Both the position numbers and the translations under genes were made by a program. Below the pieces are notes generated by a model. The model made no database searches, was not told where the DNA came from, and saw only the letters and a list, made by a program, of their open reading frames with translations. Shown here piece after piece: positions 7,372 through 38,900 of a stretch of 64,000 nucleotides of DNA (positions are counted from its first letter, which is position 1; every line of letters begins with the position of its first letter). Source of the stretch: Macrostomum lignano (taxonomy: Eukaryota); the NCBI GenBank assembly GCA_002269645.1, contig NIVC01002210.1, forward strand, positions 62,001-126,000. The letters are read 5' to 3'.

Positions 7372-13713
<6,342 letters not shown>

Positions 13714-20299: not shown

Positions 20300-20490
20300 C
20301 TTCTCCAGCCTCACTCCTCATCAAAGGCACCCGCATCCCCATCAGCTTCCCCAGCATCAATGCTATCCCAGCCTCACTCGTCATCAAGCACACCCGCATC
20401 CCCATCAGCTTCCCCAGCATCAATGCTATCCCGGCCTCACTCCTCATCAAGCACACCCGCATCCCCATCAGCTTCCCCAGCATCAATGCT
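20300..20490 (-). repeat. Three tandem copies of a 63-bp unit containing the last codons and stop of EIF2B2
   Basis: The unit encodes [17 protein letters not shown] followed by GGCTGGGA. Confidence 0.9.
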
Positions 20491-22368
20491 ATAGTCATCC
20501 TGATGGTACTGCTCAGCCAGGCAGCGGTGCAGATGCGCGGGTGCCAAGCCGCCCAGGTTGGTGACAAACAAGGTCACAAGGCCGGGCGGCACCAAGTCAT
20601 ACTTGGGACAGTGCACCTCGGCAAAGGACAGATTCTCCTCCAGCAGGCAGGCCGGGTTCAGATAGACGTTGGCCCGTTCAACGCTGTGATATGCGGGGGC
20701 GAGCTTGTGCGCGGGCGTGCAGACCAGCACTGGCACGGAGTGGCGCTTGGCCGCCAGCAGGAGACCGTGGGTGCCGCACTCGGCCCTGAGGCCGCCGTCG
20801 GCGAACACCGTCTGGGCGGAGAGCAGGCAGCGGTGCACTCGGGACATGACAGCGAATGCGTGCGCGTCAGTGATCAGGCTGGCGTCGATCTGGGAGGGGG
20901 TGAGTTTGAGATTGATCTGGCGATAGTAACCACGGAAAGGATGCCAGGAAAGTGTGGCATCTGGGGGTGTGGGATCTGAGGGGGATATGGCATCTGGGGG
21001 TGTGGCATCTGATGGGGATATGGGATTTGGGGTGTGGGATCTGATGGGAATATGGGATCTGGGGGTGTGGCATCTGGGGGTGTGGCATCTGGTGGGGTGT
21101 GGCATCTGGGGGTGTGGGATCTGAGAGGATATGGGATCTGGGGAGGGTGTGGCATCTGGGGTGTGGCATCTGGGGGGTGTGGCATCTGGGGGGTGTGGGA
21201 TCTGAGAGGATATGGGATCTGGGGAGGGTGTGGCATCTGGGGGGTGTGGCATCTGAGGGGGATATGACATCTGGGGGTGTGGCATCTGATGGGGATTTGG
21301 GATCTGGGGAGGGTCTGGCATCAGGGGGTGTGGGATCTGATGGGGATATGGGATCTAGGAGAGTGACATCTGGGGGTGTGGGATCTAAAGAAAATGTAGC
21401 ACTAGGGAGGGTGTGGCATCTAGAGAGAGTGTGGCATCTGGGGAGGGTGTGGCATCTGGGGAGGGTGTGGCATCTAGAGGGAGTGTGACATCTGGGGAGG
21501 GTGTGGCATCTAGGGAGGGTGCGGCATCTGGGGAGGGTGTGGCATCTAGTGAGGGTGTGGCACTAGTGAGGGTGTGGCATCTAGTGAGGGTGTGGCATCT
21601 AGTGAGGGTGTGGCATCTAGTGAGGGTGTGGCATCTAGTGAGGGTGTGGCATCTAGTGAGGGTGTGGCATCTAGTGAGGGTGTGGCATCTAGTGAGGGTG
21701 TGGCATCTAGTGAGGGTGTGGCATCTAGTGAGGGTGCGGCATCTACGGAGGGGTTGGCATGATGTGAGATCTGATGTTTAGAAAGGGTTGCGCTCAGTTT
21801 CCAAAAAAACACACCTGCGGCACAGTTTTGAGCAGCTGCAGCATCCGAGAACCGGAGAAGTTGGGCCCAGAGTCGCACACAATCGCTTGAAATTTGCGAG
21901 TAGCAGCCGCTGTCTGCAGCACCCTGGCAACTGAGTGCGAGTAGCCCAGCGTGAGCACCACCTCGTTCTCGCCGATGTGGGCGGCGCCGTGGCTGCGCAG
22001 ATCGTCCAGACTGGTCTCGAGTTCCAGCGACAGCTCTTTGATGGCGGCAGAAACGGCATCGCGAAGACTGTCGGCTTTCACCTGAATTGAAAGAAAAATT
22101 AAAATGCACGGATCTAGGAAGTGATTAAATCAACAGCTATAGGCTTACCTGTATATTCAAAACAAAGGTGCAATACACAATACGCGACTAATGCGCATAA
22201 AATGACAGCAACAAATCTATACATAGAGCACAGAGCTCTATGTAGACAGATTTTGCTTAAAAGGGGCAGAAAGGCCAGACACACAGACAGATGACAGACA
22301 GACAGAATGACAGACAGACAGACAGACAGAATGACAGACAAAACGACAGAATGACAGACAGACAGAAT

Positions 22369-24830: not shown

Positions 24831-26255
24831 AATTGAAATCTATAAAAAGATGCATTTAATTTAGCTAGTATGCAAGGTAGAGGCATTAGTGGTTAGGGTT
24901 AGATTTAGGGTTAGGGATATACAGAGCTACCTGTTAAAAGGCACCAATAAAAAAATGTACCAATTCAACCAATTGATGGTGTAATCAATTTCTTAGTCAG
25001 TCAGTATCAGTCTTAGTTAAAGTTAACAAAATGGCTAAGCAATCAGAATCAATCCTCCAATATATAGCAACCAACCCCCTTCCAATATACAGTGGCAGTT
25101 AGAAGTTGAACCCCCCTATCTTTATCTATTATATCTCACAAAAATGAGTACAAGATTTGTAGAAAGGTAAAAGTATGGACATTATTTTTTTAATCCTGTG
25201 CTTTCTGTTTTCATATTTAAAGCAAACAACTTATAACCCTGAACTTAGCATTGCAAGCTCTTTTTAGCAATAGTTATTCCTCTCAAAGTTTAAAGGTCAA
25301 GGAACAGTTAGCATTTAAATCTTCCTAATTAAAAGCATTAAAGTATCTGGTATAGGTTCACTTTTTGCTATAGTAAGATGCTTGCAAGTTTAATAAATTT
25401 CACTATTTAGCTAATACATAGGGCTACATATCCTAGTCCCAACTATGTTTATACTGTACAATTGCTATGTCCATTTAGCCCAAGCCCAACCCTTATTACA
25501 TTTAATTGTACCCACAACATTGGGGGGGGGGTATTTGCCCCCCTCCTAATATATAGCAACACGCGGCCATGATATGGGTGGAGGTTAGGGTGGTTTTTCA
25601 CAAACTAGCTGCCAACCTTTTCACTAGAAAGGCGGAGTGGCCAAAAATATTGAAGGTTTAAAAAAGCTGTTTTCTACTTTTTTAGAAATCTTAAAATGTG
25701 AAAATAAAAGATTAAACAAAATAGCCTAACTAATGCCTGATCCTGAAAATTTTATGTTAACTTGCAAGTAGTCTAGGCTGGGGTTTTTTTAAGGTTGGAA
25801 ATTCAGTTGCCAGCTAGCCCTTGGGGCTCAAAATCCAGTTGCCAATGGCTATTTTGGGTTGCCTATTGGCAACTAGCCAAATTCTCAACAATAGATTTCC
25901 AAGACTCATTAAAATGTATGCACTGTATGACTGTGGGAATGAGATTGTCTAGGACTTATTATTGACATTGTCAATTTTAGCAACTTAAGTATTTGCCACA
26001 ACTTAGATTTATATAGCACTTTTATTATACTTACAATTTTTTTACAAAATCATTTTTTTGAAATTGGCAACAGTCATAGGGAAAATAAAGTTGCTAGATT
26101 GGCCTCTGATGACAAAAATCTAGTTGCCAATGAGATTTTCAAAGGGCCAAAAAAATAAACTCAGAATCTAGGAGTTAAATTGTAACAAAAAAAGATAAGC
26201 CTTGCATTACTTTTAGTAGTCCTAGGCCTATATTTAGATGATTTTTATATACATA

Positions 26256-29394: not shown

Positions 29395-29810
29395 ATAGGC
29401 CTAAATACCTAAATTGAGAACTCTTAGCCTAGGCCTAGAGCCTAATGTCTGGTCTTAGGCCAGGCCTGGGGCCTAAAAATTTAATAGTTTATAAAATTTA
29501 GGCCTAAAGGTAAAATAGAGAAAAATAGCCCTAAGCTACTAGGGTTCTATCATGGCACTTTAAAAATGAAGGAATCATATCAACTAAAACTGGCCTACCC
29601 ACTACCCTAGTATTTGCTTATCTTAGATAAGCTTTATGCTTAGATAAGGAAACGATCGAAAGACTCGTCTTTGGATTAGTATTTCATTTAATATAGCAGG
29701 CTAGGCTTAGCCGGGGCTGTTGCCCCCAGGACCCCGGGTCCTGCACGCAATGGCGTGGTGAACTATCTGTGCAGTATGAGACTGGTATGGCCCTTATCCC
29801 AACCAGCGAT

Positions 29811-29955
29811 GCTCACACCTGCCTCCCCTGGCGGGCTGATAGCTAAAGAGACTTTGTCTCCTGATTTTCACCTTGCAAGGCGCACTTCGAAGGGTACTCG
29901 TCCCGTGGGTGTTAAGGCAGGCTCTCGGGCCTTGCCGAGCTAATTCGTTGGCGCC
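29811..29955 (+). ncRNA. HDV-like self-cleaving ribozyme in the LINE 5' UTR
   Basis: P1 GCTCAC (29811-16)/GTGGGT (29905-10) with G1-U wobble. P2 CGAA (29888-91)/TTCG (29944-47), extendable by GGCGC/GCGCC. P3 GGG/CCC around L3 TACTCGT. P1.1 AC/GT. P4 hairpin at about 29915-29936. J4/2 CTAA with the catalytic C at 29940. Confidence 0.75.
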
Positions 29956-30184
29956 GGGTCCTGGTGTGACCATATAAACGCACCCTCTAATGTCCCAGTG
30001 TAACTCCGTGCTGATGGACGCTTGGCCAGGGAGTAGTCTGGTCGCTAACGGTTCCCCTTGCGCTTTTGGGTCCCCCGCAGGGTGGTATTTCGCTTTTTGG
30101 GGGCCTGCCGCTTGGTTTGGGGTTGCGGCCTTGCGGCTCTTTGCCTGTGTTCTGCAGGAAGTCCCACCTTTTTAATTCCAGCCA

Positions 30185-31705
30185 ATGGCTTCTAACCGAA
30201 GTACCCAACCGGCTGTGGATGACACAGTGCCTCCGGCCTCGGCTGGGGCCGTGGACTCCGCGGCCATACCACCTGCTACCATCGGGGACGCCTCGGCGAG
30301 ACCCGTGGAGCCAACTCTGAGCGGTGCCTCCGAGAAGACACCTGCTACTCCAGCTGCCAAGCAGCTGAGCACCACCTCTGGAGCTGCCCGCCGTCGACTT
30401 AACAAGGCGAGGCGGGCCAAGGAGGGCGGAAGCCTAACCGGCGCCAGGGGCCAACGGCCCGCGGCAGCGGAAGCTTCCTAATCTGGGGCGGTGGCGGAAG
30501 AGGGCCTCGAGCCCACTGAAGCCCCTGTCCAGGATGGGGAGGCCGATGCAGCCGGGAGGGTGGACAGCCCACCTGAAAAATGCTCCACCGACCCCCGGGC
30601 CTCCTACGCTGATGCGGCAAAGAGGCAACCGGCGGTTGTCATTCTGGGGAAGGACGCGCGCCTGTCTCCCGATCAGCTGAAGCAGGTGAGAGGTGCCGTT
30701 GATGGCCTCCTGTGGAAGCAAACTCTGAAGGGCACGCCTCTGAACATTCATTCGAATGCGACGAGGGACTCGTGCCTTCTCATTTGGCCCAGTGATGCTG
30801 ACTCGGGTCGGCGGCTCCTTGAGCTGCTGCCCGAGCAGAGCTGGGACCTCAACCTAGCCTTCTGCAGAGAGGACGAACGCCCCCGGACCAAGAGGCATCG
30901 AATCTGGGTTCCGGCCAGGAGCGTCGTTACCTCTGCTGACGAGCTCCGGAAAGGACTGCTAGCAGTCAACCGGGAGCTTCCCGCCGCGGGCCTAGTGGTG
31001 CATGACACCCTTAAGCGCACCGACGGCACTGGCTTCACAGCCATCCTGGGGCTGTCGGACGCCTGGGTGAGGCGCTATCCGCACGGCAGCTTCATCAACG
31101 TCGGCCTTTGGAAGCTGCGCATCCGCTCCTACGAGGCCGACCCTCCCCGTGGTGGTGAGCAGGGTGGGCGGAATGCCGAAGCAGCCGGGGCCGTGGCGCG
31201 AGCTTCTGCTCAGGCTGCCAAAGCAAACCGCCCCGCCCGGCAGCACGGCCGCGCGGGTAAAGCCGAGCGCGCTGCTGAGGGCGGAGGAGACCGACGCCCG
31301 GCACGCAGCACCAAGCGACGCGGCCTGTACCAGCGCGCAGCTGAGGCAGTCCGTACCGCCAAAATCACCCAGCTGAGGAGAGAGGTCGCCGGGACGCCTA
31401 GGCGCACCAGTTCGTCCAGGGAGGGTGGGGATGTCCCAGCTGGGCCCAACCCCTCGGGGCAGGGCCGACTGGAGACGGACCCGCCTGCCCAGGCGGCTGG
31501 CTGCTCCAGGGCATTGGGCCAGTCTGAAGCGGAGGACCCCATGGCTGGTGGGCGAAGGGCGGCGAACGCTGCCTATTGCCTTCCGACCAACCGGGGGCCT
31601 TTTGCTGAAGAAGAGCCCATGGACACCGGTGACCCCGACCCGAAGCTGGTGAGCGCCGAGGAGGAGGAGGAACTCCTGGCGACTGCAACACCCGATCTGC
31701 ACTGA
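30185..31705 (+). CDS. LINE ORF1 (DUF4780-like, no zinc knuckle), interrupted by one in-frame TAA at 30479-30481
   Basis: ORFs 30185-30481 and 30491-31705 are in the same frame. The SYADAAK...RIWVP...VGLWKLRI pattern resembles LOA-type ORF1. Confidence 0.75.
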
Positions 31706-34700
31706 TGCCAGCGGCTACCTGGTGTCTGCAGATCAACACCCAGCACTGCGTGGCGGCGTCAGTCAACCTGATGCGCACGACAGAGCAACAGCTTCCGGGC
31801 CTGGTCTTCGTACAGGAGCCCTGGATGACTAAAGGTAAGCCAAATAATGTGCCATCTGACTACCACTGTTTTTGCATGGCGGACTCTCAGCCTGGCCCAA
31901 GATCTCTGGTCTTTGCTGCAAAAGCTTTTGAAGCATGGATGAGACCTGATCTCTCGACTGGGGACATCTGTGTTGTTCAAATCAATAACCTCATTCCAAA
32001 TAAACCTGCGCTGGTAGCATCTGCCTATTTCCCAGGCGATGCCCCAGTAGTCTGCGACGCACTAGTCAACCTCATTGACTATGCCGCGTCCCGACGGTTC
32101 GAGCTGCTCATTGCAGGGGATGTGAACGCACACCACCTGCATTGGGGCAGCAAGAACACCAATAACAGAGGCGAGGAGCTGCTGGCCTACGTCAGCAGCA
32201 CAAACCTCAATTTCTGTAACGTGGGCAATGCACCAACGTTCAATAATGGGCGGTGGGCCGAAGTCATCGACACCACCATCGCCTCACCCGGACTGCTTTC
32301 CGCAGTCACGGGCTGGCGAGTGTGGGACGAGGACTCGCTCTCGGACCACCGCTTTATCCGCTTTTGCATTGGGCCGACCAAGCAAAAGCCTAAAGTCACT
32401 TGGAGTCGGAACGTCAGGAACACCGATTGGGCCGCCTTTGGCTCGAAGCTGAGCCGCGGCCTTCGGGATCTTGACCCCCCCAGTGACCTCTCTGACTGCC
32501 AGGTGATGGATGATCTCGCCTCCTCCCTGGGCGGGGCGATCACCACTGCCTTTGAAGCAGCCTGCCCCCTAAAGGCCTATAAAGGCAAGAAATCTGCTCC
32601 CTGGTGGAACCCAGAGCTCGGGGCCCTTCGGCGCCGAGCCAGGACCCTCCAAAGGCGAGCACTCAAAACCAAAGACCCATCTGATATAGAGGCCTACACC
32701 CGTGCGATCCACGAGTTTAAGGGCCAAGTCAGAAGGGCCAAGACGGACAAGTGGCGCCAATATTGCGAAGGGCTTGAGGGCTCTCGCCCCGTAGCCCGCG
32801 TGGTTAAGGCACTCACTAATGACCGTTTTTCTAAACTCTCTGTTGTGAAGAGACCTGATGGCTCGGTCACAGAGAGTTCGGAAGAGACTCTAGAGCTCAT
32901 GCTCAACAGTTTTTTCCCTAAATCTCCGACTCAGCAGGGCCCGCCCGACCACACAGTGGGAGGGCAAGGCCTAGCAAAGTCTATGATCACCAAAGACCGC
33001 ATTATTAGAGCGGCAAGGTCCTTTAACCCGTTCAAGGCGCCTGGGCCCGACGGCATCTACCCAGCGTTCTTGCACGAGGCGGTAAAAAACCACCGCTTCC
33101 TGGACCTGCTCTGTCGTCTCCCTCGAGCTTGTATGGAGCTGGGCTATGTACCAGTTGCATGGAGAGAGGCCCGGGTGGTCTTTATCCCCAAGCCTGGAAA
33201 GAGCGACTACCAATCGGTGAAGGCCTTCAGGCCTATCAGCCTCACTTCTTTCTGCCTCAAGCTCCTCGAGAGACTGGTGCTTTGGCGCCTACTTTCGGTC
33301 GAGCTGAAGCGCTTCCCACTCTCGCAGAACCAGCACGCCTTCCGCGCGGGCAGGTCAACCGAGAGTGCTCTCCATGTCATTGTTGACTTCCTGGAGAGGG
33401 CCGTTCTTGGCAGCGGCTTTGCCCTCTCGCTTTTCCTGGACATTGAGGGGGCCTTCGACAACGTCATCTTCGATGCCTTTTGCAGAGCCCTGGAATCCAG
33501 GGCCACGCACCCTCACCTTGTCCGGTGGATCATGTTCATGATCCGGAACCGCACTGTTGTGGCCCACCTGAACGGCAGCTCTCTTTCGGTGCCTGTCCTG
33601 AAAGGGGGCCCCCAGGGCGGCGTTCTCACCCCCGTTCTCTGGAACATGGTCATGGATGAGTTGCTTTGCAGTGATCTCCACGACCCCATTCTCAAGGTGG
33701 GCTATGCCGATGATGTGACCGCGATATGCGCGGGCCCCTCGGTTGATACCATCAGAGACCTGCAGGGCTTTCTGGGACGAGCGGAGCGTTGGGCAAACCA
33801 ATGTGGCCTTAGACTCTCAGAGTCGAAAACCACAGCAGTCATGTTTACCAACAAACTGCTCTGGACCATTAAGCCCCTCACCCTCTATGGAAAGAATATT
33901 TCCATGGAGAAGCAGGTCCGCTGCCTGGGCCTCACTCTGGACCACAGGCTTAACTGGACTCCGCACATTCAAACTAAAGCCAAAAAAGCCCTGGCTGTCC
34001 TGGCTCAGATCAGGCGCGCCGTGGGCACCACCTGGGGGCTCACCCCCAGGAAGCTGTGGTGGATTTACACTGCCATCATCCGCCCCTCGATCAGTTACGC
34101 CAGCCTCGTGTGGGCTAGCGGCCTGAGCGTCAAGAGCAACCTCGACGCTCTCTACAAAATCCAGGGCAGAGCCTGCCGCATGACTATGGGCGCTCCACCC
34201 TCTACTCCTTTTGAAGGCATGAATGCCTTCCTCTGTGCCCCTCCTTTGGATATATATATCAAAGGAGAGGCGGCGAAGAGCACCCGGCGTCTTCTGGATG
34301 CTGGGGTGGCCTTCAAGAAAGTGCGGGCCTTTAAGAAGCGGTCGCTTATCCCGCACTCTGACCTCTGCCTCAAGGCTCTCGAGGAGTGTGGCGGGCTCAA
34401 CATCCTCACGGACTCGATCCCAGCCACCCTTCTCCTGAGCCAAAGGTATAAGGTCACCATTCAGCCTCGACACGAGGCGAGTGACAGCTGGAGCGATTCT
34501 GAAGTCCACTGTTACACTGACGGCTCTATGAGGCATGGTCGTTCAGGCTTCGGAGCTTGCGTCTTCTTTAAGGGAGAAGTGGTGTGGAGCTACTCCCAAC
34601 ACACTGGGCTCAACTCCAGTGTTTTTCAGAGCGAGGTGCTTGCCATCAGCTCCTGCGCGGCAGAGCTGCGCCGAAGGCAGCTTGGCGGCCGGAAATTTAT

Positions 34701-35403
34701 TTTTCACTCTGACAGCCAAGCTGCCCTTCGGGCCCTCTGCCGCAGCACCGCCAGCTCCAGGTCCGTCCTGGACTGCAACACCCAGCTCAACGGGCTTGCG
34801 CTAGGCAACCAAGTGGAGCTCAGATGGATCCCGGGCCACGCCGGCTTCCTCGGCAACGAGCGCGCTGACCTGCTGGCCAAGGCTGGCTCCGTCGGCGCGC
34901 TGCTGGGGCCGGGCCCGGGAGCCCCCATCCCCGCCTCGGTGATCAATTCCCGCGTTAAGCGATGGGCTGACTCCGAGCATCTCCGCAGGTGGCACGACAC
35001 CCGGAATTGTAGGCAATCCCGTGCTGCCGTCCCCTGCCCCTCTCCTCTCCTGCGTAGAGCCCTCCTCAGGCTCAACCGCAGAGACCTCAGAGCAGTTAGC
35101 ATGGCCCTCTCCGGGCATGGCTGCTTCTCTCGCCACCGTTTCCTTCAGGGCCAAGTACCCGAGGAGCGGTGCCCCTTCTGCCGCTCAGGCAGTGAAAACG
35201 CCGAGCATTTTATCTGCCACTGCCCGGTTTTCACCAGGGCCAGGCTTACTCACCTCGGGCCAAACCCGGTTCTCTCCGACGTTTGCAGGCCCGAGAGCAT
35301 CCCGCTGCTCGCCCGGTACCTCAGGGACACCGGACGAGCTGATTTCTTCCCCACCGTCGGTGAGGAGGACCGCGCTGCAGGCGAGACCGACGGGTCCCCC
35401 TGA
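31705..35403 (+). CDS. LINE ORF2 polyprotein: AP endonuclease, reverse transcriptase, RNase H, C-terminal CCHC
   Basis: Uninterrupted 1232 aa. VQEPW, GDVNAH, SDHRFI; KAPGPDG, FRPISL, LDIEGAFDNV, GGPQGGVLTP, GYADD; YTDGS, FQSEV, SDSQAAL, WIPGH, GNERAD; CPFC-x8-HFICHC. Confidence 0.97.
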   Translation: MPAATWCLQINTQHCVAASVNLMRTTEQQLPGLVFVQEPWMTKGKPNNVPSDYHCFCMADSQPGPRSLVFAAKAFEAWMRPDLSTGDICVVQINNLIPNKPALVASAYFPGDAPVVCDALVNLIDYAASRRFELLIAGDVNAHHLHWGSKNTNNRGEELLAYVSSTNLNFCNVGNAPTFNNGRWAEVIDTTIASPGLLSAVTGWRVWDEDSLSDHRFIRFCIGPTKQKPKVTWSRNVRNTDWAAFGSKLSRGLRDLDPPSDLSDCQVMDDLASSLGGAITTAFEAACPLKAYKGKKSAPWWNPELGALRRRARTLQRRALKTKDPSDIEAYTRAIHEFKGQVRRAKTDKWRQYCEGLEGSRPVARVVKALTNDRFSKLSVVKRPDGSVTESSEETLELMLNSFFPKSPTQQGPPDHTVGGQGLAKSMITKDRIIRAARSFNPFKAPGPDGIYPAFLHEAVKNHRFLDLLCRLPRACMELGYVPVAWREARVVFIPKPGKSDYQSVKAFRPISLTSFCLKLLERLVLWRLLSVELKRFPLSQNQHAFRAGRSTESALHVIVDFLERAVLGSGFALSLFLDIEGAFDNVIFDAFCRALESRATHPHLVRWIMFMIRNRTVVAHLNGSSLSVPVLKGGPQGGVLTPVLWNMVMDELLCSDLHDPILKVGYADDVTAICAGPSVDTIRDLQGFLGRAERWANQCGLRLSESKTTAVMFTNKLLWTIKPLTLYGKNISMEKQVRCLGLTLDHRLNWTPHIQTKAKKALAVLAQIRRAVGTTWGLTPRKLWWIYTAIIRPSISYASLVWASGLSVKSNLDALYKIQGRACRMTMGAPPSTPFEGMNAFLCAPPLDIYIKGEAAKSTRRLLDAGVAFKKVRAFKKRSLIPHSDLCLKALEECGGLNILTDSIPATLLLSQRYKVTIQPRHEASDSWSDSEVHCYTDGSMRHGRSGFGACVFFKGEVVWSYSQHTGLNSSVFQSEVLAISSCAAELRRRQLGGRKFIFHSDSQAALRALCRSTASSRSVLDCNTQLNGLALGNQVELRWIPGHAGFLGNERADLLAKAGSVGALLGPGPGAPIPASVINSRVKRWADSEHLRRWHDTRNCRQSRAAVPCPSPLLRRALLRLNRRDLRAVSMALSGHGCFSRHRFLQGQVPEERCPFCRSGSENAEHFICHCPVFTRARLTHLGPNPVLSDVCRPESIPLLARYLRDTGRADFFPTVGEEDRAAGETDGSP

Positions 35404-35979
35404 GCGACACCACTTCAACGGAAGTCGTTGGTCGCCAGGGGCTAGCGGAATGGGCGGTCTCCTCCGCCTCCTCGCTGCATCCGCCGGACGCCCCCTGCAG
35501 CTAAGTAAGTAAGTAAGGCTTTGAATATATTCAGTTCAGTTCACTAGGGAAAGGCACACGGCAATTTTAGGCTTACTTTGATTTGATTGAACTTAGTGCC
35601 TTTGGGCACTACCATAAAGTCTCTCTTAAACAATTAAATTTAAAGACATTAAAGTTCACAAGACTGTAACTGGGCTCGTAGAGGCCAATTATCATGAAAA
35701 AAGTTTTTTTACACAAACAGCTGATTGTCATGACTGTTGGCAGCTTGGCTGTTGTTGTTTTTTTACATGAAACTCTTCCCCTCCTAACTTGTCCGCCAAA
35801 CTAGAGTTAAATAGGCCCATCCGCCATACATTCAAAAATATAGTCCGGTCAATATGAATATAACCCTGAGTCCCTGATCAACCTGATCAACCTGTAAAAC
35901 GTAGCGAAAGTTTTTTGAAGAATAATTTTTTTATTTAATTAAATGAATTGAGAGGTAGAACGACCAGTCAACAAACCGA

Positions 35980-38900
35980 ACCTCCATGGCTGACCCGCGC
36001 GACACTGAAGCCCTCTACGAAGCCCTAGGGCAACTCCTGGACTCGGCGCCTTCTCGCGACATTGTCATCATCGCTGGTGACTTCAACGCCACACTCCCTG
36101 CTGACGGCAGGCTCGTCAAGAACAGATGTGGAACTCCGAACGCTAACTCTGCAATCCTAGCAAACTTCATCCAAGCCAGAGACCTCGGTCCAATCAGTGG
36201 CTTCATGCGCCAACCCATCAAAAAGCTTCCAACTTTAGTCGGCACCAACAACAGAGTTACCCGGCTCGATTGGATCATGACTCACCTCTCAAACAAGAAC
36301 GGGTCTACGACGTTTGCCTGCGGGATGTTTGCCAGACGACGTTTGCCAGCGAGACGTTTGCCAGCCGACGTTTACCAGCCGACGTTTGCCAGCCGACGTT
36401 TGCCTGCGGGACGTTTGCCAGCCGACGTTTGCCTGCGGGACGTTTGCCAGCCGACGTTTGCCTGCGGGACGTTTGCCAGCCGACGTTTGCCTGCTGGAAG
36501 TTTGCCAGAAAATATGTGCCAGCCAATATAAATCCAGTCAGTGAAAAATTTGATACTGAAATATTCGCAGTTTAGCGGTTTGACAAAAATCGTTTTTACT
36601 CAAACTTTTTGACGGTTATTTGCATATATACAAGTTTGAAAGCAAAATCTATAAATTATGCTATTTATTAGTCTAACATCTAATATCTAGTTTAATAACG
36701 ATTTTCTTTGAATGTGAAAATATAGTTTACTTAATTTTTGACAATTGTGTATCGTTTTTTCCAGTTTGAGATGCTTGATTTTTGATGTGCGAAAGAAGAC
36801 ACGCAGATTAAAACGGGAATCTCCAGCGATTTAAGGTATGAAGCAAACAAAAAGAGCTGCTGAGCGGTGGCTTATCTATTTCTCAGTTCATTGGGGGATC
36901 CAAAAGTAAGCAAATTGATTCCAATGCTGTTGTATTACTACTCAAGTAAGACAGGAAACCGCGATCTCAACGTACATGTGTAGACGAGTCGAATGCGGTA
37001 CGTTTGTATAGTAAGCTAGCTGAATAGCCAGACAAGCCGCCAGTAGCAAGAACTAGTAGGATAGCAAGCGCTAGACACTTCGTATACAAAGCTTAGTCAC
37101 GCCAAGGACTACTAAAGTAGAAGGACGCGCAGCAGTCGAAGTCTATGGAAAATGTTTTGAAGGCCATAGGGAGATAGGAAGTTTTCATCTTTTCAGCACA
37201 ACAATTGTTATTGCTTTCATACGAGGCAAACCCATTGTTCATCTTTTGATATGTTGTGCCAAAATCGTTGTTAAACTAGATATTAGACGTTAGACTAATG
37301 AACTGCATAATTTATATATTTTGCTTTCAAACTTGTATACATGCGAATAACCGTCAAAAAGTTGGAGTAAAAACGGTTTTTGTCAAACCGCTAAACTGCG
37401 AATATTTCAGTATCAAATTTTTCACTGACTGGCTTTATATTGGCTAGAACATTTTTTCCGGCAAACTTCCAGCAGGCAAACGTCGGCTGGCAAACTTCGG
37501 CTGGCAAACGTCTCGCAGGCAAACGTCGGCTGGCAAACGTCGGCTGGCAAATGTCGGCAGGCAAATGTCGGCTGGCAAACGTCCCGCAGGCAAACGTCGG
37601 GCAGGCAAACGTCGGCTGGCAAACGTCGGCTGGCAAACGTCCCGCAGGCAAACGTCGGCTGGCAAACGTCCCGCAGGCAAACGTCGGCTGGCAAACGTCG
37701 GCTGGCAAACGTCGGCTGGCAAACGTCGGCTGGCAAACGTCCCTCAGGCAAACGTCGCTATCCCAACAAGAACAGAATGCCACGAGTTGTCAACATCCGC
37801 CCCAGCTGCGTTCAGTCCGACCACAGTATGCTGGCCTGCAATGTCGACCTAAGCTGGATGAAATTCAAGAAGCCCAAGCCCTACCCGCTCTGGGCCGACC
37901 TTCGCAACCCCGACACCCGCGACCCCCGCGAGATATTTCTGCGCAAGCTGCTCTCTGCTGAACCTAGCCCTGGTGAGTCCGATAGCGCCTTTACGGCTGC
38001 TGTTGAATCAGCTGCAGCCAATCTGCTCCCCAGGCGCAAACCGAACCAGCCCAAAGCTGTATGGGATTCGTATCCGGGGATCGCACAAGCCAGACACAAG
38101 GCCAGACAAAGAGTTCAGAGTGCCAAAGCCACGCAGGGGCAGGACAGTGACGAAGCCACCATCAGCCGCGAAGAGCTGCAACGCGTCTATGCCGAGAGGA
38201 TCCAGGCCCACGTCTCCGTAGCCGTCACAGAAATTGAAACTGCAACTGCAAACTGCAAGCACGCTGCAGCCTGGAGAGCTATAAACTGACTAACTGGCAG
38301 AAAACCTCGCCCCTCCGCCCCCGTGGGAGCCGAATCGATAGACCACCACAAATCGATTCTCGCTGATCACTATCGCAAAGTTCTCAACAACCTGAGACTG
38401 AACTTGTGCTAGTCCCGAATTTTAGCCATATCACCAACAATGACATATTTGACTGCGGACCCATCACTCAAGCAGAGGTGCGCAAAGCGCTTGCCACAAT
38501 GCGACCCGACGCTGCCACCGGCGCTGACGGTGTGCCTCCCCGTGTCCTAAAGTTAACCGAGCTGATACCGGTGATCACTGGCTTACTGAACAAGTACAGT
38601 CCTCTAGGAGGAGACCCAGACGCCACCGCCCACCACCTTGGCGGATTTCAAAGATTGTCTCCATTCCCAAAAAGGACCATCGACCAGCTTAGACAACCAG
38701 CGTGGCATCGCACTCGAACCCGCACTGCCAAAGCTACTCAACTCCATCATCCGCAATTGCCTGCTACGTGGACTCGACGCGCAGCTTCTCAGTGTTCAGA
38801 GCGGCTTCCGCCCCGGCTGATCGACAATTGAGCAAATCGCGACAATCCGCACAATTGTTGAAGCCTGCAAGACACGTCAGATGTCTGTCTCGATTGCGTT

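Follow-up and report, generated by a model that had tools for sequence, protein, structure and literature searches.

A candidate large HDV-like ribozyme in the 5' leader of a young LOA/Lian-like LINE from the flatworm Macrostomum lignano

The 5' UTR of a LINE in the flatworm Macrostomum lignano carries a sequence that can be read as the nested double pseudoknot of an HDV-like ribozyme, and the question that this locus raises is whether its RNA would cleave itself and, if so, at which bond. Several non-LTR retrotransposons, namely R2, R4, Dong, RTE, L1Tc and the LOA-clade element Baggins, reportedly have HDV-like ribozymes at their 5' ends (Eickbush 2010/2013; Ruminski 2011; Sanchez-Luque 2011), and for R2, Baggins, L1Tc and RTE the release of LINE RNA with a 5'-OH has been described. 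Insects, trypanosomes and R2 elements account for most of the LINE HDV-like ribozymes catalogued thus far. Here we examine a window of 64,000 nucleotides, by which we mean the whole stretch of M. lignano DNA that was analyzed, with all coordinates on the plus strand unless otherwise stated. Our preferred reading, held at a probability of roughly 0.55, is that positions 29743-29955 form a "large" HDV-like self-cleaving ribozyme, located in the 5' UTR (sense strand) of an M. lignano LINE that is young and LOA/Lian-like.

The element itself is well preserved. ORF2 (31705-35403) is intact and encodes 1232 amino acids, in which Pfam recognizes an endonuclease (Exo_endo_phos), a reverse transcriptase (RVT_1) and an RNase H (RNase_H) domain, while ORF1 (30185-31705, 506 codons), which gave no Pfam domain match, is interrupted at codon 99 by a premature stop (30479-81), the sole defect of this copy. 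Codon 99 is a Gln codon in other M. lignano copies, so intact copies exist. ORF2 is 93-99% identical to pieces of M. lignano gene models and ORF1 95% identical to another, and the family is therefore young. These protein matches bear out the view of the first-pass annotation, made from the letters alone, that the host is not an insect. It had also placed the motif in the 5' UTR of a LOA-type LINE, which agrees with the domain content of ORF2 and with its named database relatives ("Lian-aa1 retrotransposon protein", 34-36% identity); it is on the names of these Lian-type matches that the LINE would be assigned to the LOA clade. The element ends in a (TAAG)4 tail at 35502-35517. No target-site duplication was found for it, and its 5' end cannot be fixed by that route. 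The window holds no further copy of this LINE.

Two other features of the window may be recorded here. A foldback-like insertion at 36308-37757 has terminal inverted repeats of ~400 nt, made up of 238-nt arms with 93% complementarity and of tandem repeat arrays with units of 14/29 nt (CGACGTTTGCCAGC), on either side of an AT-rich center. It interrupts the region coding for the endonuclease in a second LINE, itself truncated at the 5' end (35986-36300 and 37760-38290). On the minus strand, an ORF at 20437-21318 has an eIF-2B subunit family domain (Pfam IF-2B, E 4e-23) and is presumably a host exon.

The core of the putative ribozyme occupies 29879-29955 on the sense strand of the LINE 5' UTR and was identified by direct reading and by our own descriptor scan. 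P2 is formed by a 5' strand at 29879-29891 and a 3' strand at 29944-29955, in which four base pairs adjoining P3 (CGAA 29888-91 with TTCG 29944-47) are separated by an internal loop, with TTG on its 3' side, from five distal pairs (GGCGC 29879-83 with GCGCC 29951-55). P3 (29892-29904) pairs GGG 29892-94 with CCC 29902-04 and encloses the seven-nucleotide L3, TACTCGT (29895-29901), which has U first and G near its end. The P1 3' strand GTGGGT (29905-29910), located by the descriptor scan, follows P3' with no spacer and is itself followed by the P1.1 partner GT (29911-12), which pairs with L3 positions 2-3 (G29911-C29897 and T29912-A29896). P4 is a hairpin at 29916-29936 in which GGCAGGC (29916-22) and GCCTTGCC (29929-36, one bulged T) flank the loop TCTCGG. 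J4/2 reads CTAA (29940-29943), and its first base, C29940, the candidate catalytic cytosine, comes directly after P4 and ahead of P2'. The helix order is thus P1, P2, P3, (L3), P3', P1', P1.1, P4, J4/2, P2'. The first-pass annotation had listed the double-pseudoknot elements in this order, and its coordinates hold for the core from P2 to P2'; the P1 5' strand, which it had put at 29811-29816, is not supported. It had also argued that TACTCGT and GT are compensatory variants that keep both P1.1 pairs, a point that stands and that is extended by a differently compensated P1.1 in a related element. P2, P3 and P4 also come out of MFE folding, with overall z-scores for the region that are unremarkable (-0.2 and -0.6 in the window, -2.7 in the relative). 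An alternative P1 3' strand, GCAGGC at 29917-22, was considered and rejected, as it would leave 12 nt between P3' and P1', break P1.1 and destroy P4.

The relative in question, L001, is a 6.5-kb Logan contig with 62% ORF2 identity and is the sole close relative whose DNA was compared. Its terminus shares the ...CTGCAGCTAAGT motif of the window's tail, and its 3' end runs beyond this into unique DNA, which marks the contig as genomic. In the homologous place of its 5' UTR, L001 carries the same core (GGG, TCTCCGT, CCC, GCAGGC, AG, a 9-bp P4 hairpin, CTGC and TCTGAG), and the local alignment of the two cores has a z of 4.4. P3 is invariant and L3 retains T1, C5, G6 and T7. In P1.1 the AG of L001 pairs with C and T of its own L3, so that both pairs have changed on both sides, from A-U plus C-G in the window to U-A plus C-G in L001. 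Over a 43-column alignment of the paired segments, comprising 17 pairs, 91-94% of cells are paired, and double-sided changes fall at two proximal P2 pairs, both P1.1 pairs and one or two P1 pairs, against none in slid controls. J4/2 keeps AGCT in L001, but the two A's of the window are replaced by GC (CTGC). This covariation is drawn from two sequences, with stems taken from their own MFE folds, and its support is modest. Within these bounds, the reading of the region as a putative HDV-like LINE 5' UTR ribozyme is supported by both conservation and covariation. Between the candidate ribozyme and the conserved downstream UTR, L001 has ~135 nt that are absent from the window.

The comparison with L001 also bears on where P1 begins. 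Gapless alignment to L001 bases 1-6 (GCCTGC) places the P1 5' strand of the window at GCACGC, 29743-29748, and the predicted scissile bond between T29742 and G29743, ~68 bases upstream of G29811. In L001, P1 is a perfect 6-bp helix with G-C at the site, and its 5' strand consists of the first six bases of the contig, a placement with a chance of ~0.002. A contig start of this kind would follow from copies that begin at the cut site, with the assembly interrupted at the boundary of the repeat. The homologous P1 of the window forms five of six pairs (G29743-U29910, C-G, A29745 x G29908, C-G, G-U, C-G), with a G-U at the cut site and one position that is double-compensated relative to L001. The linker AAUG (29749-29752), identical in L001 7-10, leads from P1 into a closed, structured J1/2 domain of 124 nt (29753-29876), whose MFE stems match L001 11-162 stem for stem. 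These include the closing stem (29753-62 with 29867-76; L001 11-19 with 154-162), a long hairpin (29768-29817; L001 27-78), a second hairpin (29818-35; L001 80-95) and, at 29848-60, a third, GAGAC-TTT-GTCTC. When the stem arms are aligned without gaps, all 21 J1/2 pairs are formed in both sequences and 10 of them have changed on both sides, compared with 0-1 double changes in slid controls. It is the conservation of these stems, together with the AAUG linker and the closing stem, that sets L001 G1 in register with window G29743.

By homology, then, the predicted cut site needs to be revised to G29743 and J1/2 to 29749-29878. The third hairpin had been recognized at the outset and is retained; the proposed J1/2 length of 60-70 nt, which depends on a P1 5' strand at 29811-29816, is not supported. 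The A x G mismatch in P1 renders the activity of this particular copy uncertain. Leaving 29743-48 unpaired costs only 0.2 kcal/mol and lengthens the closing stem. We also observe a small hairpin with a conserved AAUG loop at 29744-29757 (L001 2-15), whose stem reads CACGC/GCGUG in the window but CCUGC/GCAGG in L001, two of the pairs being compensated. Since the hairpin shares bases with both the P1 5' strand and the J1/2 closing stem, it could compete with ribozyme folding.

Other M. lignano copies were read through gene models, at the amino-acid level. In the model P0123, VLVPWVLRQAPLGPAELIRWRRVLP followed by the start of ORF1 corresponds to the translation of 29893-29963 joined to 30182, and at this level the copy keeps L3, the P1 3' strand, P1.1, J4/2 and the P2 3' strand, with residues VLVPW fitting the P3-L3 bases and AELIRWRR those of the P2 3' strand. 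Its P4 loop is 3 nt longer, and its P4 3' strand lacks one T, which gives a perfect 7-bp helix. The contig collection has no exact match on record to the window ORF2 or to P0123, and the contig of P0004 is without the 5' UTR. In a further model, P0002, the residues GLLPPGPRVLH correspond to the translation of 29714-46, again joined to 30182, and the remainder of that model was sought in the window and is absent from it. P0002 thus derives from another locus, which means that sequence upstream of both candidate cut sites travels with the element and that the RNA source of those copies was not cut there. The putative ribozyme does not simply set the first base of every M. lignano copy. Where 5' ends are set by processing, copies should differ upstream of the cut site; the window and P0002 share the translation of 29714-46, and L001, whose contig starts at G1, appears to agree with the expectation. 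A His codon (CAY) at 29744-46 in P0002 and a Trp codon (TGG) at 29906-08 in P0123 make it probable that the whole family has the A x G mismatch.

The shared upstream sequence lies within a GC-rich leader at 29698-29742, delimited by a shift in composition at ~29698 and containing the hairpin CAGGACC-CCG-GGTCCTG (29727-43). The idea that 29699-29743 might be a partial upstream copy of the ribozyme 3' half, as in tandem monomers, was tried and set aside (alignment z 1.8, p 0.06). Downstream of the core, the 5' UTR contains an intron-like stretch at 29964-30181, running from GT at 29964 to ttaattccAG at 30181. Four gene models with different upstream exons (P0002, P0003, P0090 and P0123) join the LINE at 30182, a point that directly follows ttaattccAG and precedes the ORF1 ATG by 3 nt, and P0123 leaves at 29963, immediately before the GT. 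This junction (29963|30182), as seen in gene models, suggests either that the LINE 5' UTR contains an intron or that host transcripts, or a spliced leader, are captured by a strong acceptor. A second LINE family of M. lignano, whose ORF1 starts MASSAS, is met in P0096, a peptidase gene model that runs through its 5' UTR. P0096 gives a weak match of six amino acids at 29692-29709 (E 0.26), and its residues 225-287 show short collinear matches to 29692-29929, namely YSRLGL, GTRP (P3-L3-P3') and RQ.LG (P4). At the amino-acid level, and with weak statistics, this hints that the core is kept in the second family.

On the preferred reading, the RNA would fold during LINE transcription, often within a longer host read-through transcript, in the order P1 5' strand (G29743-C29748), AAUG, J1/2 (29753-29876), P2, P3/L3, P1 3' strand (29905-10), P1.1, P4, J4/2 and P2 3' strand. 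C29940 would then catalyze a reaction in which the U29742 2'-OH attacks the G29743 phosphate, releasing LINE RNA with a 5'-OH at G29743. What the analysis shows is the motif, its excess over shuffled sequence, its conservation and its covariation; cleavage, its position and the use of the cleaved RNA are what we infer. With an internal A x G mismatch in P1, cleavage in this subfamily may be weak, which would fit copies that carry sequence upstream of the site. Three explanations of that shared sequence are open: cleavage may be weak, with uncut read-through RNA being copied; the leader may be a true part of the element, with the ribozyme internal to it; or the fold may no longer cleave.

The last of these leads to the most serious competitor of a cleaving ribozyme, namely a conserved, structured 5' UTR RNA without self-cleavage, which might be a former ribozyme that now serves RNA stability, translation or protein binding, or might resemble the HDV fold only in part. 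The strongest covariation lies in the peripheral hairpins and not in the catalytic core, and curated models do not recognize the region. Rfam returned no HDV family match in the whole window at gathering threshold, nor at E<=10 on 29600-30200 or on L001 1-700. The Rfam HDV models are, for their part, blind to pseudoknot pairs and to a P1 strand 130-160 nt away, and cases such as this one are missed completely by curated covariance models. Also in favor of a non-cleaving RNA are the imperfect P1 of the window (5/6), the lack of conservation of J4/2 in L001, where GC stands for AA, and the retention of upstream sequence by the copies; the G-C at the L001 cut site and a contiguous proximal P2 of only 4 bp likewise count against the cleaving form. 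However, P1.1 and P2 covary as a double pseudoknot requires, L3 retains the U and G needed for a metal-binding wobble, the J4/2 cytosine is kept in both sequences, the L001 contig begins at the predicted cut site and the motif is very rare in shuffles. On balance, we consider a non-cleaving RNA unlikely, while giving it more weight than any other competitor.

A second competitor keeps the ribozyme and its core but follows the first-pass annotation in forming P1 from G29811-C29816 (GCTCAC), with a J1/2 of 62 nt and a cut 5' of G29811. In this copy it is the most stable P1 duplex available (-5.8 kcal/mol, vs. -3.3 to -4.2 kcal/mol for the homologous site), it forms all six pairs with a G-U at the cut site, and our own descriptor scan finds it. 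All six bases nevertheless lie in the 3' arm of the long J1/2 hairpin, paired with 29769-75, a hairpin conserved in L001 within the domain that shows the 10 double changes, and the homologous L001 segment (72-78) cannot pair with the L001 P1 3' strand. The match also carries no statistical weight, because GTGGGT consists entirely of G and T and accepts two partners at each position. In shuffles, 6/6 partners (G-U allowed) are expected 3.1 times in the 181 nt upstream, 86% of shuffles contain one that starts with G, and in the window itself a second, equally good partner lies at 29817-22. Finally, the implied J1/2 is far shorter than that of L001 (157 nt) or of a more distant candidate, L008 (160 nt). 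A P1 at 29811-29816, and with it a cut 5' of G29811, is accordingly difficult to sustain and we regard it as improbable.

More speculative still, and in our estimation a slim prospect, is a ribozyme that is deliberately internal and attenuated, its P1 5' strand being held alternatively in the CACGC-AAUG-GCGUG hairpin, with a mismatch in P1 and a cut ~45 nt inside the element. If this were true, the fold would be a switch, in which uncut full-length RNA is copied into insertions and keeps the leader while cut 5'-OH RNA is translated, and it might act together with the splice acceptor just before ORF1.

Least credible is a chance match of a permissive descriptor in GC-rich sequence, for although the relaxed descriptor yields ~0.5 loci per 64-kb strand in shuffles and picks out two unrelated places in the window, it matches just 7 of 3000 dinucleotide shuffles of the 485-nt UTR, and none of 3000 when L3 must have U first and G sixth, while L001 has the same motif in the homologous place with compensatory changes, making it very unlikely that the core motif is due to chance. 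The two additional matches, at 7618-7863 and 25577-25753 (loci 7758 and 25660), have an unrelated L3 and no LINE context and are taken as chance matches.

To return to the preferred reading of a large, cleaving ribozyme, more distant elements offer a partial comparison. Scanning metagenomes yielded 80 loci of LOA-like type (28-38% identity). Rfam had no match in the 20 of these that were searched, and among the ~23 loci with at least 250 nt upstream of ORF1 our own scanners returned one convincing motif, the ~22 other distant relatives with some 5' UTR having none. With a loose descriptor, matches were not enriched in the sense over the antisense orientation. The single motif, at 45-288 of L008 (Ga0208479_1000771), is a near-canonical HDV-like candidate upstream of ORF1. 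Its P1 has 7 bp, with a G-U pair at the cut site, and its J1/2 is 160 nt long; P2 and P4 have 6 and 8 bp, L3 reads TCCACGTT, the P1.1 partner is GG and J4/2 is CCAA. At E<=10, the only Rfam families to match this stretch are HDV and HDV-F-prausnitzii, both sub-threshold (19.8 and 14.5 bits). Going by the L008 candidate, LOA-like elements outside insects carry such putative ribozymes with a long J1/2. Searches with ORF1 returned only L001 and L002, and the contig of the latter, a relative with 57%-identical ORF1, starts downstream of the ribozyme region. Its positions 1-200 consist of a tandem duplication of a ~109-nt unit that is homologous to L001 302-400, a segment absent from the window.

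How, then, does this candidate compare with known systems? The ribozymes of R2 elements have a P1 of 6-7 bp (down to 4 bp), a J1/2 of between 216 and 498 nt, a P4 that varies and few bases that are invariant, and in Baggins, L1Tc, R4 and Dong the cut falls at the element's 5' end (PMC3774820). Like the ribozymes of R2, R4, Dong, RTE, L1Tc and Baggins, the window candidate shows the double-pseudoknot order, a sense-strand position in the 5' UTR, a predicted P1 of 6 bp with one mismatch, a long J1/2, variability in P4 and one conserved C after P4. It differs from the R2/Baggins type in its P1.1, which has A-U plus C-G (U-A plus C-G in L001) instead of two C-G pairs, in its L3 (TACTCGT), in its free-living flatworm host, and in a predicted cut site that lies at least 30-45 nt inside sequence shared by copies and not at the first base. 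In the literature searched we found no link between HDV-like ribozymes and Macrostomum, the only flatworm case being planaria R2.

The closest structural parallel is with the large HDV-like ribozymes, in which peripheral domains bring P1 and P2 together (Webb and Luptak 2016, PMC4908430). Both the window and L001 have this layout, with a closed domain (124 nt in the window) between P1 and P2, whose closing stem would draw these helices toward each other. The J1/2 of L008 is also long (160 nt), but it is predicted to fold as separate hairpins. Set against the large ribozymes, the domain differs in that its sequence and stems are peculiar to this LINE lineage. The core layout is also that of the Rfam families HDV_ribozyme (RF00094) and HDV-F-prausnitzii (RF02682), to which L008 aligns over P3, L3, the P1 3' strand, P4 and J4/2, whereas the window and L001 score nothing with the Rfam HDV-like models at E<=10. 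Should the preferred reading hold, it would pose the question of why copies retain sequence upstream of the cut site. The lineage would also add to the known systems a free-living flatworm host, a well-supported structured J1/2 and two natural P1.1 variants, in which a C-G pair is swapped for A-U or U-A with pairing kept.
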